Assembly (NCBI GenBank): GCA_037379345.1
Contig: CM074513.1
Coordinates: forward strand, 26,412,001-26,476,000
Reading direction: 5' to 3'
Length of the DNA stretch: 64,000 nucleotides
Source: Perna viridis
Taxonomy: Eukaryota
The position numbers and the translations under genes were made by a program. The notes under the pieces were generated by a model. The model saw only the letters and a program-made list of their open reading frames with translations, searched no databases and had not been told where the DNA came from. The stretch's first letter is position 1, and each line of letters starts with the position of its first letter. Below, one piece after another: positions 1 through 6,489 of the stretch.

Positions 1-475
1 TAACTGACTTGATAATGAGTACAATAAAACATTTCTATTAAAATGACATTACAGTAAAAATCGTGCAATTACTACTAAAATTACTCATAGCAATTGCACA
101 TATAAGTTTATAGATTTTAAAACCATTTCTTATAAGTTTATTCAAGGGAGCGAGGAATCGATTTGTAATGAAAAAAATAACATAATTCAAGAATAACAAA
201 GATAACAGCAAGAAGGGGAAAGTAGACACACACAATAAAGAACATGAAATTAAAAAAAAACATGCTCATAGATTCAAAAATAAATGAGCTCCCAGACTCG
301 ACTAAAAACTGTGAGCATTAGAAAGCACTGGTATTCTAAGGCAATCAAACACTGCAAAGATTATCAAGGAATCTTTGAAAAAGAAAAAGGATGATAAAGG
401 TATCAATCAAGAAACAATGAAAAGCATTCAGTGTGAATTGAAGACATTAATATCCATTTTAAAGATCAATCCTAC

Positions 476-3400
476 CTCCAGTCATACGGGCAACGTGAGA
501 TGACATCGATTTCTTCTTCAGTTCAATACTGTCGGGTCTGGAGCGGCCAACCCATCCTTCCATTGTTTTTTCTGAGACATTTCAAACAAAGGTTATGACA
601 TATCATGATATAATGTGATCCAAACTATGTAAAAGACGTTAAAACATTAATGGAGTTTTCATTCATTTATTTTTCAACATTATTTAAGTGTTTGGTGTTA
701 TTTTAACGGCAAACGTTTTGAAAGGGGTGAAATACTGTAACCTAAGCCAGTACTTCCAAAACGTCTATAGTTGCAACTATGATTTTCTTATTGATATGAC
801 GTGAAATTCCATTCTGTAACATAGAAACAAATAATTTCCATTTGTCTAGCCATAGTCGTCTATTTGTATGGCACGAAATGGGCAATTTATTAGGTTATGA
901 ATACCAAAATATTGACTGAGCCAGCGTCACTCCTTTAACTTCTAGTTTTCATATCATTTCGTTTCTTACGTTCCTAAAAGTTCCTAAGCGTTCGACCTCA
1001 TAAATAATGTAACAGACAACAAACATATAAATCAAACTAAGAGGTACCTATTTTTATTATTGGAATTCTCTCATATGTTAAACCTTTTTATCCTAAATGC
1101 TATTTTAAATATGACTTGTGTTGTATATCATTTATCAAAATTTATACCTTTTTCTGATGAAATTAAATTAAGATCATGAATCCATTTCTGTGTAATCTGC
1201 AATGATAATCGAAGTATATTTCGAGATGAGCTTTAAAATTTTTATTGAAATTCAGTGAAAGATTTATTAAGAGTAATTTCATGAGATAAATGCAGATTCT
1301 GTTGACTATCTGGAAAAAACCTATACAGTACTTTATACGCGTAAAACACTTCTATTAATTTTGAATGGACTGTACAGTAACGGTAGTGTACCTTAATTTG
1401 AAATATTCAAACTTTTCTCATAACAAGTTTTATGACAACTGTAAATCATCATATTATGTATTGACAAAGATTATGACAAATTATACCTTGCAGGGACATC
1501 ATCTGAACTATAATTACACAAATGACAGATAACTTGAAGATGTCATGAATTGTTTAATTTTAATTTCACATATTCATTGTCTAAGTGACTTTAAACTGAA
1601 TAAAGAAAATGTCTTACCACATAACTACCACCGGTTTCTTTTTCTACAGCAACATTCTGTCGGTGTTCGTCGTCAGCAGGGTTTTCTGTACCTACATAAA
1701 CATGACGGGCATAATTTATGATGTGACAGTAGTAAAACTTTATTTGCTACAAAAATGAAATTTATGTCAAAAAAAACACTAAAAATAAATATAAATAAAT
1801 ATTTCGTTCGGCAACGTTCGTACCCACTTGTTCACATTTTGCAATCACAAATGCAAGATTTCAGACTATCAGACGACCTTTACCACGAAAGTGATTCGTC
1901 AATATCATCTGCAGAATTCTTGCCCAACAACACAATACCTTTTTTGCACAACTTAAGAAGTGAAAATACCGATATTTTAAACAAGTTGAAAACAAAGCCG
2001 GAAACAGCAAAAAGAAGACATAGGACAAGTCACGAAAACAAGGAAGCTTAAAAGGTACACAGAAAAATGAGCTGTACGAACCCCACTAAAATTTAGTGTG
2101 AATTGGATGCTCCGAAAGGATTAGCAGTTCCTGCTTTTTTTCCAAGACATTTGCTATGATGCTTATTGAAGGTATGTATTGTGATGGAGCATTATACAGT
2201 AATTACCATCTATAAAGCCAGATAAATCCCTCCCATTCTTGTACACAAAACTGTATATGTCATCTGCTTTATCAACACTGCCTGTAGGTAAACTGTTCAA
2301 AAACAACTGGCAAAGCTCGAACAACTTGCTAGGGTTGTTTGACTTGGCATGAACGAAAACATCACCACCTACAGAGAAAAAAGGTTGTAATTTGCAAGAA
2401 TCTGTGGCAGAAAAGTCAATGCAATGAATTAAAAGTAGGAATGTACATTTCAGTGCATTTTTCTTTCATGTAAACAGGTCTGTTTTCTTTTCCTGCGATT
2501 TAACATTTTCGCGAAACACATTTTGAACACATTCTTAATTATACCATTGTCTTAGTCCAATCAGTAAATTAATTCTCAAATTATTCAGTTAAAACATCAT
2601 TTTTCTTTTAGTGGAAAAAATATTTCATTTTTATTTCAGAAATATTGAATTATTCATCACACACTACTCCAATAAAATCGGCATGTAAAGCTACCAAGTA
2701 ATATACTTCATGTGACAACTTGTCTGAAGTATTTCAGTGGTCATACGTCGAACAGATTCATGTTTGAAATTTGCTTCTTTTTTGTCATAATAAAAATATG
2801 ACTCAAAAATGTATTAATGAACTTAATGGTATATAATGGTACCTACCAGAGCTGGGCATGTCTCCCAGTGCACCTTTTCTGTAAGCATACGTATAGTTTT
2901 GTTTTGGAACACCTCCAAGCTAAAAAAGTAGAACTAACTGTTAAATATAGAGGTTAGACATTTGTTGAATAGTTGGACATGTTGAATTTGAATGTTTTAT
3001 TCAGTAAATGACAATTTTGGAGTGGTGTAAATTACTCTTTACTTGAAAGAGTAATCAAGGGAACCAAGGTTAGGGCGATAATCAAAAGAATGTAATCCAG
3101 GGACAAAGACCAGACATGGAAAACAGACATACACAACAAAGAACATAAACCATGTGTTCATTTATCTGGCAGATTAACAGTGTTTTTTAAGTTCAAAATC
3201 AGTTGCAATAATGGCAATCTTCCTATTCAAAGTGCAACATCTTCATGAACATGGTATATTTGTTATATTTCAATCCTAAATATATTTTAGAATTTCAAGT
3301 TACATTCTAAGCTTTGTATGAAATGTACATCCATACCTGTCTATATGTGGTTGGTCCAAAACCAACACCAGCCCAAATTTCGTCAGATTCGTCCCTCATC

Positions 3401-4783
3401 TTTGGATCAGAAACCTGATCGACCATTGACTGGAGTTTGGCACAAACTCTTCCTACTTCTTTAACGTTTGCAGTTGGTTTTAAGTTGATCCATAGGTACA
3501 TGGCATGGTCTTTCCCTTGTGAGAAAACCTATTGTAATGGAAGTGGTTAATAAAATGTTAGAAAACACATTGATAATTTTTTTTTTTCTGGAAGATTATA
3601 ACGTTTTCACCAGTTTAGTCAAGACTGGAGGGCTAATTTCATTTCTGTTGTTGTAAGGTATCTTTGTATTACTTTAAGTAACTCATGCGTGGCTTTTACC
3701 TTGTTCATTTTATTTTGGTTGAAATTGATTACTATTATTCCTGTTAGCGTTGGAAAATTGTATTTAGATTCAGTCATGGCACCAATTTTACCCTGACAGA
3801 AACACTTACAGACGGTTGGCTAGCTGGAGGTCCGGCGGCATGTACAGGTTTTGGTGTTATCACTTCAACAGCCTCAGATAGTGTAGTTTTGACGTTGTTC
3901 TTGTATAACCAACTCAGGCCAGCCCCTACAGCAACGCTCCCGACTAGTATTGGCCTTCCATAAAGAAGGACTTTAGACCTTCCGGTAGAAATACCACGAG
4001 TGCTACCTAAAAGAAGACAAAAGTTGTATTTGTATGATAGATCAGTGTATACTGGGGAAAACGATGAAGTTGTATCAAGAAACATTTCAGAAGGATTAAT
4101 AGTATTGAAGACAGAAAAATTATCAGAAAGTCTTTCATCAAGTTACCAAAGTATTTCCTATTTAATACATCATATCGTTTAATCTTATTTAAGCAAAGTG
4201 GTATACATGTAAATCATACTTGTTTACATATTATATGATGACACTTGTCATAATTATCTACAATTCAAGATAGATATTGATATGTTTTCTTGAAATAGAC
4301 AAAATTGTCAAGGTATAACTATTTAATGTAGTAAGTAGATAAAAGTAATTAGATTGTGTACTCTTAGGTAGTGTAACGCAAACGTCTAGTTCGGTCATAA
4401 ATGAGAACATATCCCGGATATAAATTTCTGCTTACTCACAAATTTATCCCGACTATGTTGACATTGCAATAAATTTTGTGAGATCGGATATTGAAATGAA
4501 AAAAAAACATCCACATGCATGAACTTCAGTTAAATATATGTCGTAATGAATTCTTAAGGTTCAAATGTCAATACAAATATTGTTTGTAGTAGAATGTTCG
4601 CTCAGGTAGATAGTTGTAAGTTAAAGTGCGTGTCTATATAGTTTAAAAAGTACTTCATGCATAATAAATGTGTCAACATACACTATTGTATTAATTAATC
4701 GATAACACGTTTAATTACTTACTTGTAAATGTTGAGTGAAGTTTCCCGAGCTGTCTAACGCTACCCCTGAGAGCTGCCATCAT
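476..4783 (-). CDS. DyP-type (dye-decolorizing, YfeX-like) heme peroxidase, spliced, 3' end beyond the left edge
   Basis: Exons in transcript order: 4723-4783, 3810-4006, 3337-3528, 2847-2919, 2207-2368, 1618-1691, 1148-1196, 476-571. All introns are GT-AG and phase-compatible, giving about 301 aa. Motifs: AGVGFG, MPSSGGDVFVHAKS, GRDLSGFIDGTENP (GXXDG distal Asp), GGSYVITQKWIHDL, WVGR, SSHVAR (proximal His). The distal-Arg exon must lie outside the window. Confidence 0.93.
3045..3150 (+). mobile_element. Interspersed repeat family A, short copy in a DyP intron
   Basis: AAGAGTAATCAAGGGAACCAAG...ACAACAAAGAACATAAA is shared with copies at 18966, 42403, 49315 and 53182. Strand labels for this family are relative only. 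Confidence 0.8.
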
Positions 4784-4824
4784 TCTTAGTAAGAGATAGG
4801 TTGTAAACTACTTTTGGTTCAGCG

Positions 4825-4837
4825 AAGGTCATGTGAC
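4825..4837. promoter_or_regulatory. Proximal element of the DyP gene: GTCATGTGAC (M-box/CLEAR-like E-box) overlapping an AAGGTCA nuclear-receptor half site
   Basis: Near-palindrome at 4828-4837, about 45 bp upstream of the ATG at 4783. Motif match only. Confidence 0.35.
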
Positions 4838-5149
4838 TTGATATGTCTGACATTGACATTGGCCTATTTTTCTTGCATAATTTTTACTAAAATAAAAAGG
4901 TATTTAAAGCATTATATAGTCGTCATATGCCCCATCTGTAGGCGTTGGCAATTTTTCTAAATTATTGTTGTCTGTACGATTGTATCACAATTGTCGTCTG
5001 CTAAATCAACACAATACAAGTTGAATAATATTATGAGAGTATTTAAGAATTTTTCGCGGTAAACTTCGTTCCATTATACTTTAAAAAGTAATCAACCAAA
5101 ACTAACCTTAGATCCCCCAAGTAATAAATAAATAAAAACTGAGATATCC

Positions 5150-5410
5150 GAGTTCAATAACGGCAAAACAATAAGGGGACAATTCAGACGCATCAAATCC
5201 AAGTAAATGACCAGAACGTAAAAACGGAAAACAAAGACGATCTACATACACAATGTAGCGAACCGAATAAAATACAATACATATATAAAAAAAAAACTGA
5301 AACGTAACACAAAAAAATAAGCGCTACCATTGTGAACTCGCACAAACAACGGAGAATGACACCAGGTGCTCCAAAAGGGTAAGCATGTCCTGCTCTTTTA
5401 CATTGCAAGT
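5150..5410 (+). mobile_element. Degraded repeat related to family A
   Basis: Core CCAGGTGCTCCAAAAGGGTAAGCATGTCCTGCT resembles the internal part of family A and a fragment at about 2060-2135. Confidence 0.45.
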
Positions 5411-6489
5411 GAATAAGTGAATAAAATATGTTATTAACCTTCTACCCCAAATACTTTTAAATATGTCAAAAACTGACCAATTGATTTGAATTAAAGTCGG
5501 GCATCTATACGGGGCCAATATGAAAAAAAGAGGGCCAATACGGCATTTCCGGTCGTTTGACACCACCATTTTGAGTTAAATTTGTTTTTTATGAACTTTG
5601 ATTATCAGATCTAAAAGCTGCAGAAACACACAAAAAAATCTTCCATTTTATACAAAAAGGATCTTTAAGACTGATTAAGGCAAATAAACCTATATGTTCT
5701 TGGTAAAACACGAAAGCGACTGTTCTACAAATCATCTAGTTGAGTTGGTTAAAAAAATTATCAATAAATATGTAATTTCATATTTATTAAGATATAGTAA
5801 CAGTCGGCAACTATAATGAAACTCCCGACACGAGTCACAAAGGCGTCCCATCAAGAACAACGGAGCGAATAATAATTCGCACTTGGGCAATACCATTTAA
5901 TTCAGCAGAGTATCATGATGTTAACAAAAAAGAAAAACGGAAATTGTGGAAAATCATCATCCTCTGAAATAATTAAGATGATCAAAAATCACTATAGAAC
6001 ATAGGACAATACCAATTATATTTATATGAACGCTAGAACATTTGATCTTGAACTTGTTATATGAAAAACTGACACCGTGTCAAGAATGTACTTGAAGTTT
6101 TCAAAGGAAATGAAATGTATCTCTATGTTATTTCGATGCCCTAAAATGATGGTAGTATGACAAAATTTATTTTTTTAATCCTATGAACTCCTTTCATTGA
6201 CTTGCTCTGTTACAGTATGTCAAAAGGAGCTACACCACTGCAGTTCGTAAGTGTCAATTAAATTTGTCAAGTTAATCTGGTTATATGTGGGCTATAAATG
6301 AAGATACCTTGTCTCACTTGTGAAGCAGAAACTTCTTATCGGTCAATCAAATTGTGATGACATACATATTAACAAAGGCTGGACGTATCTATGGTTATGA
6401 AGCTTACCTGAGAGTACCCGTGCGCTTTTGACTACTGCCTAGATTTTGTCAGTTTGGCAATCTTGTTATTACCCTTCAAAAGTAAGGCT

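Follow-up and report, generated by a model that had tools for sequence, protein, structure and literature searches.

Near the beginning of the 64,000-nucleotide stretch of the Perna viridis genome analyzed here (hereafter, the window: assembly GCA_037379345.1, contig CM074513.1, positions 26,412,001 to 26,476,000, or G000:C3:26412001-26476000), the minus strand encodes a dye-decolorizing peroxidase (DyP). The gene consists of nine exons, eight of which lie at window positions 476-4783, with the ninth located 131 nt outside the window start; the complete product is 386 aa long and comprises a catalytic domain of ~300 residues and a leader region encoded on two separate exons. This gene, present in a single copy in the genome (as assessed with exon 9 as the protein query), is the mussel orthologue of the metazoan “subclass P1” of B/P-class DyP heme peroxidases and, judging from its sequence and the RNA contigs, is almost certainly an expressed gene for a catalytically competent enzyme. 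The gene itself is not novel: the family has been catalogued across invertebrates. What appears to be new is the reading of the leader region as a conserved bipartite signal of the mitochondrial type that is probably cleaved; the papers on P1 DyPs that we found do not propose a mitochondrial signal, and the paper on subclass P1 (PMC9719856) does not contain the word “mitochondri”. The locus shows no difference from the P1 family as described there, and the analysis of the N-terminal extension and its processing is what is added here.

The exons and sequence elements of the gene are as follows (window coordinates unless indicated otherwise; positions on the locus sequence L004 equal window positions plus 700, and L003 is the 10 kb preceding the window).

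Exon 1, 4723..4783, minus strand: 61 nt, opens the basic leader and runs from Met1 into codon 21 (first base)
Exon 1 landmarks, minus strand: ATG at 4783-4781 and donor gtaagt, from sequence; RNA contigs from 3 runs contain the joint to exon 2
Exon 2, 3810..4006, minus strand: 197 nt, the remaining leader, hydrophobic segment, linker and Q-P-S
R24-G-I-S-T28, 3984..3998, minus strand: candidate site for the matrix processing peptidase (MPP) of the R-3 type, cleavage predicted
I40-Y55, 3903..3950, minus strand: uncharged Gly-rich hydrophobic segment, candidate stop-transfer or sorting signal
V75-H-A-A78, 3834..3845, minus strand: Φ-x-A-A motif (Φ, hydrophobic residue) just ahead of the domain, candidate second processing site or structural cap
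Exon 3, 3337..3528, minus strand: 192 nt, first strand and helix of the DyP domain
Exon 4, 2847..2919, minus strand: 73 nt, from sequence, RNA joints and intron comparison
Exon 5, 2207..2368, minus strand: 162 nt, contains GFID(G) (2219-2208), of which 2210-2208 encode the distal Asp D228
Exon 6, 1618..1691, minus strand: 74 nt, from sequence, RNA joints and intron comparison
Exon 7, 1148..1196, minus strand: 49 nt, invariant Q256 and H260
Exon 8, 476..571, minus strand: 96 nt, proximal heme ligand H295 (497-495, “SSHVAR”) and R298
Intron 8, part inside the window, 1..475, minus strand: the intron is 606 nt in all
Exon 9, L003 9869-9613 (G000:C3:26411613-26411869), minus strand: outside the window, joins in phase

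All introns have GT..AG borders and the reading frame is unbroken throughout (script check of window 1-5400, minus strand); if the genomic sequence is read straight on upstream of the ATG, the frame ends at an in-frame TAG (4810-4808). Exon 2 ends in phase 0, precisely at the start of the bacterial-type domain. At the window edge, the eight-exon model breaks off within the domain; exon 9 encodes the distal Arg, R315 (“EIVRQSMPFG”), followed by “GLFFIGY”, “DGVSDD”, D360 and a TGA stop. The N-terminus, hydrophobic stretch, GFIDG motif and proximal His quoted in the first-pass annotation of this locus are all present as described.

The exon structure is borne out by transcripts. Fourteen probable RNA runs from five studies contain 0.24-0.38 of the words of the 5.9-kb locus, which is about the exon share. 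Four of the runs, each from a different study, were aligned to L004 as assembled contigs, which show presence and structure rather than expression level or tissue. All eight introns were recovered as exact CT..AC joints (that is, GT..AG on the minus strand) at the predicted positions (L004 569/1176, 1271/1848, 1896/2318, 2391/2907, 3068/3547, 3619/4037, 4228/4510 and 4706/5423). Each of the four runs contains seven of these joints, the one between exons 8 and 9 (569/1176) among them, and three runs contain the joint between exons 1 and 2 (4706/5423); a single 1,506-nt contig spans exons 9 to 2. The first-pass annotation had named, as findings that would speak against it, leader exons (4723-4783 and 3810-4006) not spliced to the DyP exons, and a missing distal Arg or a stop in the downstream exons. 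Neither is the case because the RNA joints include both leader exons, R315 is present in exon 9, and the frame runs through without a stop. The four runs gave no sign of an alternative 5' coding isoform.

Exon 9 alone matches 41 DyP chains in the PDB (best E-value 5.8e-11), the best of these belonging to class B (Acinetobacter 7yzt, Dictyostelium DyPA at 1e-10, VcDyP and YfeX), and an exhaustive protein search with this exon yielded 276 proteins at E <= 0.001, some of them full-length at about 380 aa. The joined model is colinear from end to end with P0193 (81% identity, 386 aa) and with the “YfeX-like” P1 protein of Mytilus galloprovincialis (80% identity, 387 aa, colinear over 386/387 residues), an orthologue in the same clade; this colinearity with mytilid orthologues indicates that the exon model is correct. 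Both P0193 and P0182, orthologues that are 80-81% identical to the model, match the Pfam domain Dyp_perox_C above the cut-off (2.6e-33 and 1.1e-31, respectively), and residues 85-384 of P0193 match KpDyP, VcDyP and YfeX at about 1e-39. Single exons produced no Pfam match; a search for PF04261 across the whole genome likewise came up empty because the introns split the domain.

The active site is intact. In an alignment of 95 sequences from animals, protists and bacterial-type relatives, all 16 invariant columns, including D222, F226, D228, H295, R298, R315 and D360, and 38/38 near-invariant residues are retained in the window protein. The hallmarks of the superfamily (PF04261 and PF20628), namely, the distal Asp of GXXDG, the distal Arg, the proximal His with its acidic partner, and the propionate-binding Arg, are all present, and the stretch around R315, “IVRQSMPFG”, aligns with “IVRQSLPYG” of KpDyP. 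The AlphaFold model of the orthologue P0193 (mean predicted local distance difference test, pLDDT, 88.5) consists of two ferredoxin-like alpha+beta domains, and the top Foldseek matches of this model are all DyPs, VcDyP (5de0) being the best (E-value 2.5e-31, target TM-score 0.91).

Comparison with the closest characterized enzymes brings out what is distinctive in the mussel protein. The bacterial B-class DyPs, YfeX of E. coli (5gt2), VcDyP of Vibrio cholerae (5de0) and KpDyP of Klebsiella (6fks), have the same fold (target TM-score up to 0.91) at about 30% identity and share with the mussel protein the GXXDG Asp, the distal Arg, the proximal His/Asp and a domain of about 300 residues, but they are cytoplasmic and begin at the domain, whereas the mussel protein carries an extension of ~85 residues and its coding sequence is interrupted by eight confirmed introns. 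DyPA of Dictyostelium discoideum (7o9j, PMC8230527) is, like the mussel enzyme, a eukaryotic B/P-class DyP, and its structure has been solved; unlike the mussel protein, it has neither extension nor introns, contains a DFIDG motif, is cytoplasmic according to enhanced yellow fluorescent protein (EYFP) fusions, and belongs to subclass P4 rather than P1. EmDyp of the cestode Echinococcus multilocularis is an animal member of the same family, with a long isoform that contains an N-terminal hydrophobic helix; it is longer (434/461 aa, against 386 aa in the mussel) and is made as two isoforms by alternative 5' splicing.

A word search with P0006, one of the full-length proteins from the exon 9 search, retrieved 482 relatives. 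In Mytilus, Pecten, Magallana, Haliotis, Aplysia and many other molluscs, they bear the NCBI name “dye-decolorizing peroxidase YfeX-like”; relatives were also found in Lingula, three hemichordates, annelids, bryozoans, a nemertean, Priapulus, Trichoplax and many flatworms. The metazoan and protist DyPs have been published as subclass P1, with representatives in Amoebozoa, Excavata, SAR and Metazoa, the latter without tunicates and vertebrates (PMC9719856), and a DyP in schistosomes had been noted as early as 2009 (PMC2764848). The earlier remark that DyPs are not a standard animal peroxidase family is thus at odds with both the NCBI annotation across molluscs and other phyla and the published record.

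The gene is old and has been inherited vertically. We derived the exon structures of Saccoglossus (hemichordate), Lingula (brachiopod) and Trichoplax (placozoan) P1 genes from their loci and aligned them with that of the mussel. The run of exon sizes 192-73-162-74-49 is identical in all four species, and introns 3-7 occupy the same alignment column in the same phase. Intron 2 (phase 0, right after Q-x-S) is common to mussel, Lingula and Saccoglossus; intron 8 is common to mussel and Lingula, the Saccoglossus intron being one column off in the same phase. The Trichoplax gene model is partial and begins exactly at exon 3, but a leader exon was found upstream (L008 2315-2509) that contains the same P-ΦΦΦ-G…GG…Y-x-Y segment, the Φ-x-A-A motif and the Q-x-S|GT end. 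A quick maximum-likelihood tree of 62 rows, built from a preliminary search and rooted at the midpoint for drawing only, agrees with the introns. The eukaryotic clade is separated from 13 extension-less bacterial-type sequences with 99% support (SH-aLRT, the Shimodaira-Hasegawa-like approximate likelihood ratio test), with Naegleria, an MMETSP protist and an amoebozoan-like sequence at its base; Metazoa (99%), molluscs (98%), bivalves (97%) and the window protein together with Mytilus (99%) are recovered within it. As expected of subclass P1, the window protein falls among metazoan and protist sequences and outside bacterial class P. The description of the gene as old, intron-rich and animal-encoded therefore stands, given the shared position and phase of introns 3-7 and a tree that follows animal phylogeny, and recent horizontal transfer or contamination is ruled out by the same observations.

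Some members of the family have diverged. Gastropods possess a second, divergent DyP paralogue (P0253, P0260, P0265 and P0266, from Aplysia, Lymnaea, Bulinus and Biomphalaria, and also P0019, P0026 and P0036) of 397-431 aa, with a longer linker and with GFLDN or GFYDC in place of GXXDG; there is no such copy in the mussel genome. In P0019 and P0026, the distal Asp and Arg are lost as well, and from these sequences, some copies of the paralogue may no longer be peroxidases. Three proteins of 468-497 aa (P0048, P0069 and P0073) are very divergent: they combine a short basic leader and a “G..TYG/SVYKT.LGG” segment with large insertions, and simple pattern matching picked out neither a GXXDG nor a proximal-His motif in them. 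In Lingula anatina, the DyP gene is arranged head-to-head with the gene for GrpE, a mitochondrial matrix co-chaperone, ~155 bp apart (L007 944-2846 vs 3001). In the mussel genome, GrpE lies at C3:22.89 Mb, 3.5 Mb from the DyP gene, and this pairing was dropped as evidence because it is not conserved in the mussel.

The N-terminal extension comprises about 80-85 residues on two exons; the bacterial-type relatives begin at the domain (“M..PQ..”). Residues 1-39 of the window protein include 7 K/R and no D/E; acidic residues do not occur before position 65 (P about 2e-4 given how frequent they are in the domain). The hydrophobic core that follows starts at residue ~37-40, is ~16 residues long and contains 3-5 Gly, with a mean Kyte-Doolittle hydrophobicity of 1.66; for I40-Y55 of the window protein, the 15-mer mean is 1.89. 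A strict rule that demands a basic, acid-poor leader and a hydrophobic 15-mer is passed by at least 79 of 135 full-length homologues. Most of those that fail are just below the threshold or are truncated models. Essentially all complete metazoan orthologues have the extension, and similar N-termini occur in Naegleria (XP_002676075) and other protist members.

Column statistics and motif counts were obtained over 68 orthologues from several phyla; as these sequences are related, the counts reflect conservation rather than independent events. On average, the leader is 36 residues long and contains 7.3 K/R and 0.10 D/E (no D/E at all in 61/68), and acidic residues do not exceed 5% in any of columns 2-38. 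Basic residues peak in columns 6 (90%), 10, 13, 20, 24 (96%), 29 and 35, the first five with a spacing of i, i+4, i+7, i+14, i+18. A basic, acid-free amphipathic leader is found both in residues 1-39 of the window protein and in the orthologue means. Within R24-x-Φ26-S27-T28, R is conserved in 96%, Φ in 91%, S in 63% and T in 76% of the sequences, and the motif R-x-Φ-[SA]-[TS] occurs in 40/68 orthologues compared to 5.4 expected from shuffles. Charged residues are nearly absent from columns 39-55, where Φ40-42 reaches 99% and G43 96% and more Gly follows; the stretch ends in Y55-K56. The linker (columns 57-74) is variable; it is followed by Φ75-x-A77-A78 (94%, 99% and 90%, respectively), a motif present in 51/68 orthologues against 4.8 expected from shuffles, and by Q84-P-S-V87, which opens the domain. 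DyPs of classes B and C have been stated to be produced without an N-terminal extension (PMC8230527); the clade of the window protein does have one, and on the sequences compared here, the published generalization for class B does not hold for P1. A search of the ESM Atlas with residues 1-86 produced no usable match.

Matrix-targeting signals that MPP cleaves typically have a basic, amphipathic leader without acidic residues and with Arg at -3 of a Φ|S site; where a moderately hydrophobic uncharged segment comes next, the layout is that of inner-membrane stop-transfer or intermembrane-space sorting, as in yeast cytochrome b2, cytochrome c1 and Ccp1 and in mammalian Smac/DIABLO. These proteins share a basic leader, a hydrophobic sorting segment, a second cleavage and a soluble mature form, to which we liken the mussel layout. 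We infer that the DyP is probably delivered to mitochondria; the more specific proposal, that it is a soluble intermembrane-space enzyme made with a bipartite presequence, is about as likely as not. Under this proposal, the first ~80 residues, on the two exons that bacterial DyPs lack, would constitute the bipartite signal: the leader would direct import and be cut near R24-x-Φ|S-T; the uncharged Gly-rich segment would arrest the precursor in the inner membrane; and a second cut between the segment and the domain, possibly at Φ-x-A|A, would set the heme-b enzyme free in the intermembrane space as a soluble protein of about 34 kDa, and there it would remove H2O2 generated by respiration in the manner of yeast cytochrome c peroxidase (Ccp1). 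The latter is a heme-b peroxidase of the peroxidase-catalase superfamily that has no sequence or fold relation to DyP. Of the mitochondrial layout that the first-pass annotation proposed, the targeting part is retained, as a reading of the acid-free basic leader, the R-x-Φ-S-T motif and the uncharged Gly-rich segment seen over the 68 orthologues, and the permanent membrane anchor is not.

The case against a permanent anchor comes from the structure model and from published gels. In the AlphaFold model of P0193, residues 1-52 have pLDDT <50 and form no helix; a helix spans residues 53-70, and pLDDT is >=83 from about residue 61. Two-dimensional gel electrophoresis (2-DE) of gill tissue has yielded a DyP in two independent studies: spot 134 in Mytilus edulis, with 30,364 Da, an isoelectric point (pI) of 6.00, two peptides and a score of 59 (PMC5302490), and spot 1184 in Dreissena rostriformis bugensis, with 27,023 Da and pI 5.7, lowered under cadmium (PMC11036304). 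The values predicted for the Mytilus orthologue are as follows; those for the Dreissena orthologue are similar.

Full precursor: 42.1 kDa, pI 8.86
MPP-only processed form, still anchored: 39.4 kDa, pI 7.17
Form after the hydrophobic segment: 36.5 kDa, pI 6.04
Form after Φ-x-A: 33.9 kDa, pI 6.03

The spots (27-30 kDa, pI 5.7-6.0) fit only forms that lack both the leader and the hydrophobic segment. Given that the gels show a soluble protein of 27-30 kDa and pI about 6, and not a 42-kDa precursor of pI 9, and that no helix is predicted at 40-52, the segment that was taken for a membrane anchor is more likely a cleaved, transient sorting signal.

Several points weigh against the intermembrane-space proposal. 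Both gel masses are below that of the bare domain (33.4 kDa), the identifications of DyP in the gels are weak, and the Dreissena study reports many truncated proteoforms (PMC11036304). The gels favor soluble proteins of pI 4-7, so that a basic or membrane-bound pool of DyP could have been missed. The amphipathic moment of the single sequence is only weakly above that of shuffles (p 0.07-0.10). The Φ-x-A-A motif lies about 22 residues past the hydrophobic segment, a distance greater than is typical of substrates of the inner-membrane peptidase; with a pLDDT of about 85 in the model of P0193, it may be a structural cap instead of a cut site. We found no localization experiments on P1-clade members in the literature, and there is no DyP entry in the portions of the supplements covered for the mitochondrial proteomes of Acanthamoeba, Andalucia, Naegleria (two papers) and Euglena. 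Finally, the sole paper that remarks on an equivalent feature in an animal DyP, EmDyp, calls it a secretory signal peptide (bioRxiv 10.1101/2022.11.07.515413).

Indeed, secretion is the first alternative to be considered: the hydrophobic segment could be an endoplasmic reticulum (ER) signal, or a type II signal-anchor, that places the DyP domain in the lumen or outside the cell, possibly after a signal-peptidase cut. The EmDyp preprint predicts an N-terminal transmembrane helix in the long isoform and reads it as an export signal, but this call is itself a prediction from sequence. A few distant members of the clade (P0049, P0022, P0076 and P0096) do have short N-termini that resemble classical signal peptides, a type II orientation would agree with the positive-inside rule, and a cut directly after the hydrophobic segment would likewise give a pI of about 6.0. 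In the orthologues, however, the core starts only at residue ~37-40, behind a long, conserved, acid-free leader with periodic Arg and R-x-Φ-S-T, which is atypical of signal peptides; by a heuristic measure, an n-region of 36-39 residues is not the short n-region with a strongly hydrophobic core of an ER signal. The segment is short (~16 residues), Gly-rich and moderately hydrophobic (mean 1.66), with no conserved small -3/-1 pair directly after it, and comparison of a few orthologues by eye, rather than systematically, revealed no conserved N-glycosylation sequons or Cys pairs. On balance, the secretory route appears unlikely.

Alternatively, the ~80-residue extension might be simply an unusually long presequence whose hydrophobic segment does not arrest, so that a soluble DyP reaches the matrix. 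The leader features apply equally to this scenario; the hydrophobicity of the segment is marginal (1.2-2.1), a processed soluble form is observed, and heme b is made on the matrix side. What makes a matrix enzyme quite unlikely is the candidate downstream cut, which has no conserved Arg at -2/-3 (K/R at most 14% in columns 73-76), so that MPP alone cannot explain the loss of ~80 residues; furthermore, the strict conservation of a charge-free 17-residue segment from Placozoa to molluscs is hard to explain without a sorting role.

A third arrangement, with the leader cut by MPP and the segment kept as an N-in inner-membrane anchor that holds the DyP domain on the intermembrane-space face, is in keeping with the conservation, in the 68 orthologues, of a leader and an uncharged segment that lies between R/K-P and Y-K; at its C-terminal end, the segment has aromatic and Lys residues that resemble a membrane-interface belt. 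Such a protein should yield a spot of 39.4 kDa and pI 7.2, which neither gill study reports; 2-DE under-represents membrane proteins, so that an anchored pool could coexist with the soluble one. With no AlphaFold helix at 40-52 and 3-5 Gly in the core, which disfavor a stable transmembrane helix, the anchored form is distinctly unlikely. Peroxisomal targeting was rejected: the C-terminus (...KKMA in the window protein) is variable among orthologues and lacks an SKL-like tripeptide.

As for the reaction catalyzed, the cestode homologue EmDyp binds heme, oxidizes diaminobenzidine (DAB) and luminol, and acts as a catalase in gels; growth under aerobic conditions induces it, and the animal itself lacks catalase (bioRxiv 10.1101/2022.11.07.515413). 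By analogy with this precedent, and because the active site is intact here, removal of H2O2 is the best-supported activity of the mussel DyP. The competing idea, that the enzyme oxidizes porphyrinogens for the synthesis of heme or shell pigment, as claimed for E. coli YfeX, is a matter of substrate that fits any localization. The best PDB relatives do include YfeX, and some homologue entries are named “porphyrinogen peroxidase”, but these names are automatic annotation. Coproporphyrinogen and protoporphyrinogen oxidases act at the intermembrane-space side, which would suit such a role. Nevertheless, EmDyp behaves as a general peroxidase/catalase, and the presence of the gene in flatworms, hemichordates, placozoans and amoebae, all without shells, together with detection of the protein in gill, contradicts the link to shell pigment that had been suggested from the sequence; nothing favors porphyrinogen oxidation over general H2O2 removal, and we consider it very unlikely.

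Several additional observations concern the introns and surroundings of the gene. Intron 3 contains (window ~3040-3150) an interspersed repeat of ~110 bp that has at least 1,746 candidate copies across the genome, with 95-98% identity among the best 40; its depth exceeds 100,000 in all four RNA contig sets. This copy identity and extreme RNA depth identify it as a young, widely transcribed element, with no match in Rfam when window 1-6000 was searched. A second, older interspersed repeat lies in intron 8 (window ~139-318), with at least 1,588 candidate copies of ~100-180 bp on all chromosomes at 71-83% identity. A minor, low-depth joint of the GT..AG type (L004 1853/3743, window 1153/3043), present in three runs, leads from the last bases of exon 7 to the border of the repeat in intron 3. 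This joint and another (L004 637/3789) were rejected as isoforms and treated as probable mis-joins, their short sides being 22-23 nt and touching the high-copy repeat. One RNA contig (run X1) departs from the genome right after “ag”, 1 nt ahead of the ATG (window 4784-4786), and continues for 31 letters that have no match in the window or the assembly, whether searched whole or in halves with up to 2 mismatches; these could be a 5' untranslated exon, unassembled DNA or part of a chimeric contig. About 1-2 kb ahead of the window start, on the plus strand (L003 8080-8972), there are WD-repeat-like fragments of open reading frames (“...IALGDSCGNVCLYRYP...”, “...KDGHYVISVGGKDSCIIQWKIV”) that appear to belong to a neighboring gene converging on the DyP 3' end. 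A scan for sigma-70 promoters and terminators gave chance-level results and is irrelevant to an animal gene.

Tentatively, and with somewhat more doubt than confidence, the reading of the mussel protein as an intermembrane-space enzyme can be extended to the entire eukaryotic P1 clade, from Naegleria and amoebae to placozoans, molluscs and hemichordates. The clade would then descend from a mitochondrial intermembrane-space heme peroxidase whose two-exon bipartite presequence predates the divergence of animals, the functional counterpart of fungal cytochrome c peroxidase in most invertebrate phyla, which vertebrates have lost; no DyP would have been assigned to an organelle before it. The extension in P1 would also correct the published statement that B-class DyPs have none. 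If the localization is true, most invertebrate phyla carry a mitochondrial heme peroxidase that is absent from vertebrates and from textbook accounts of animal antioxidants, and the family provides a clean case of a bacterial-type enzyme that acquired an organelle signal on separate exons. It would also bear on the respiratory H2O2 bursts of intertidal, hypoxia-tolerant animals such as mussels and on parasitic flatworms; these have no catalase, and their DyPs, being absent from the host, have been put forward as drug targets.

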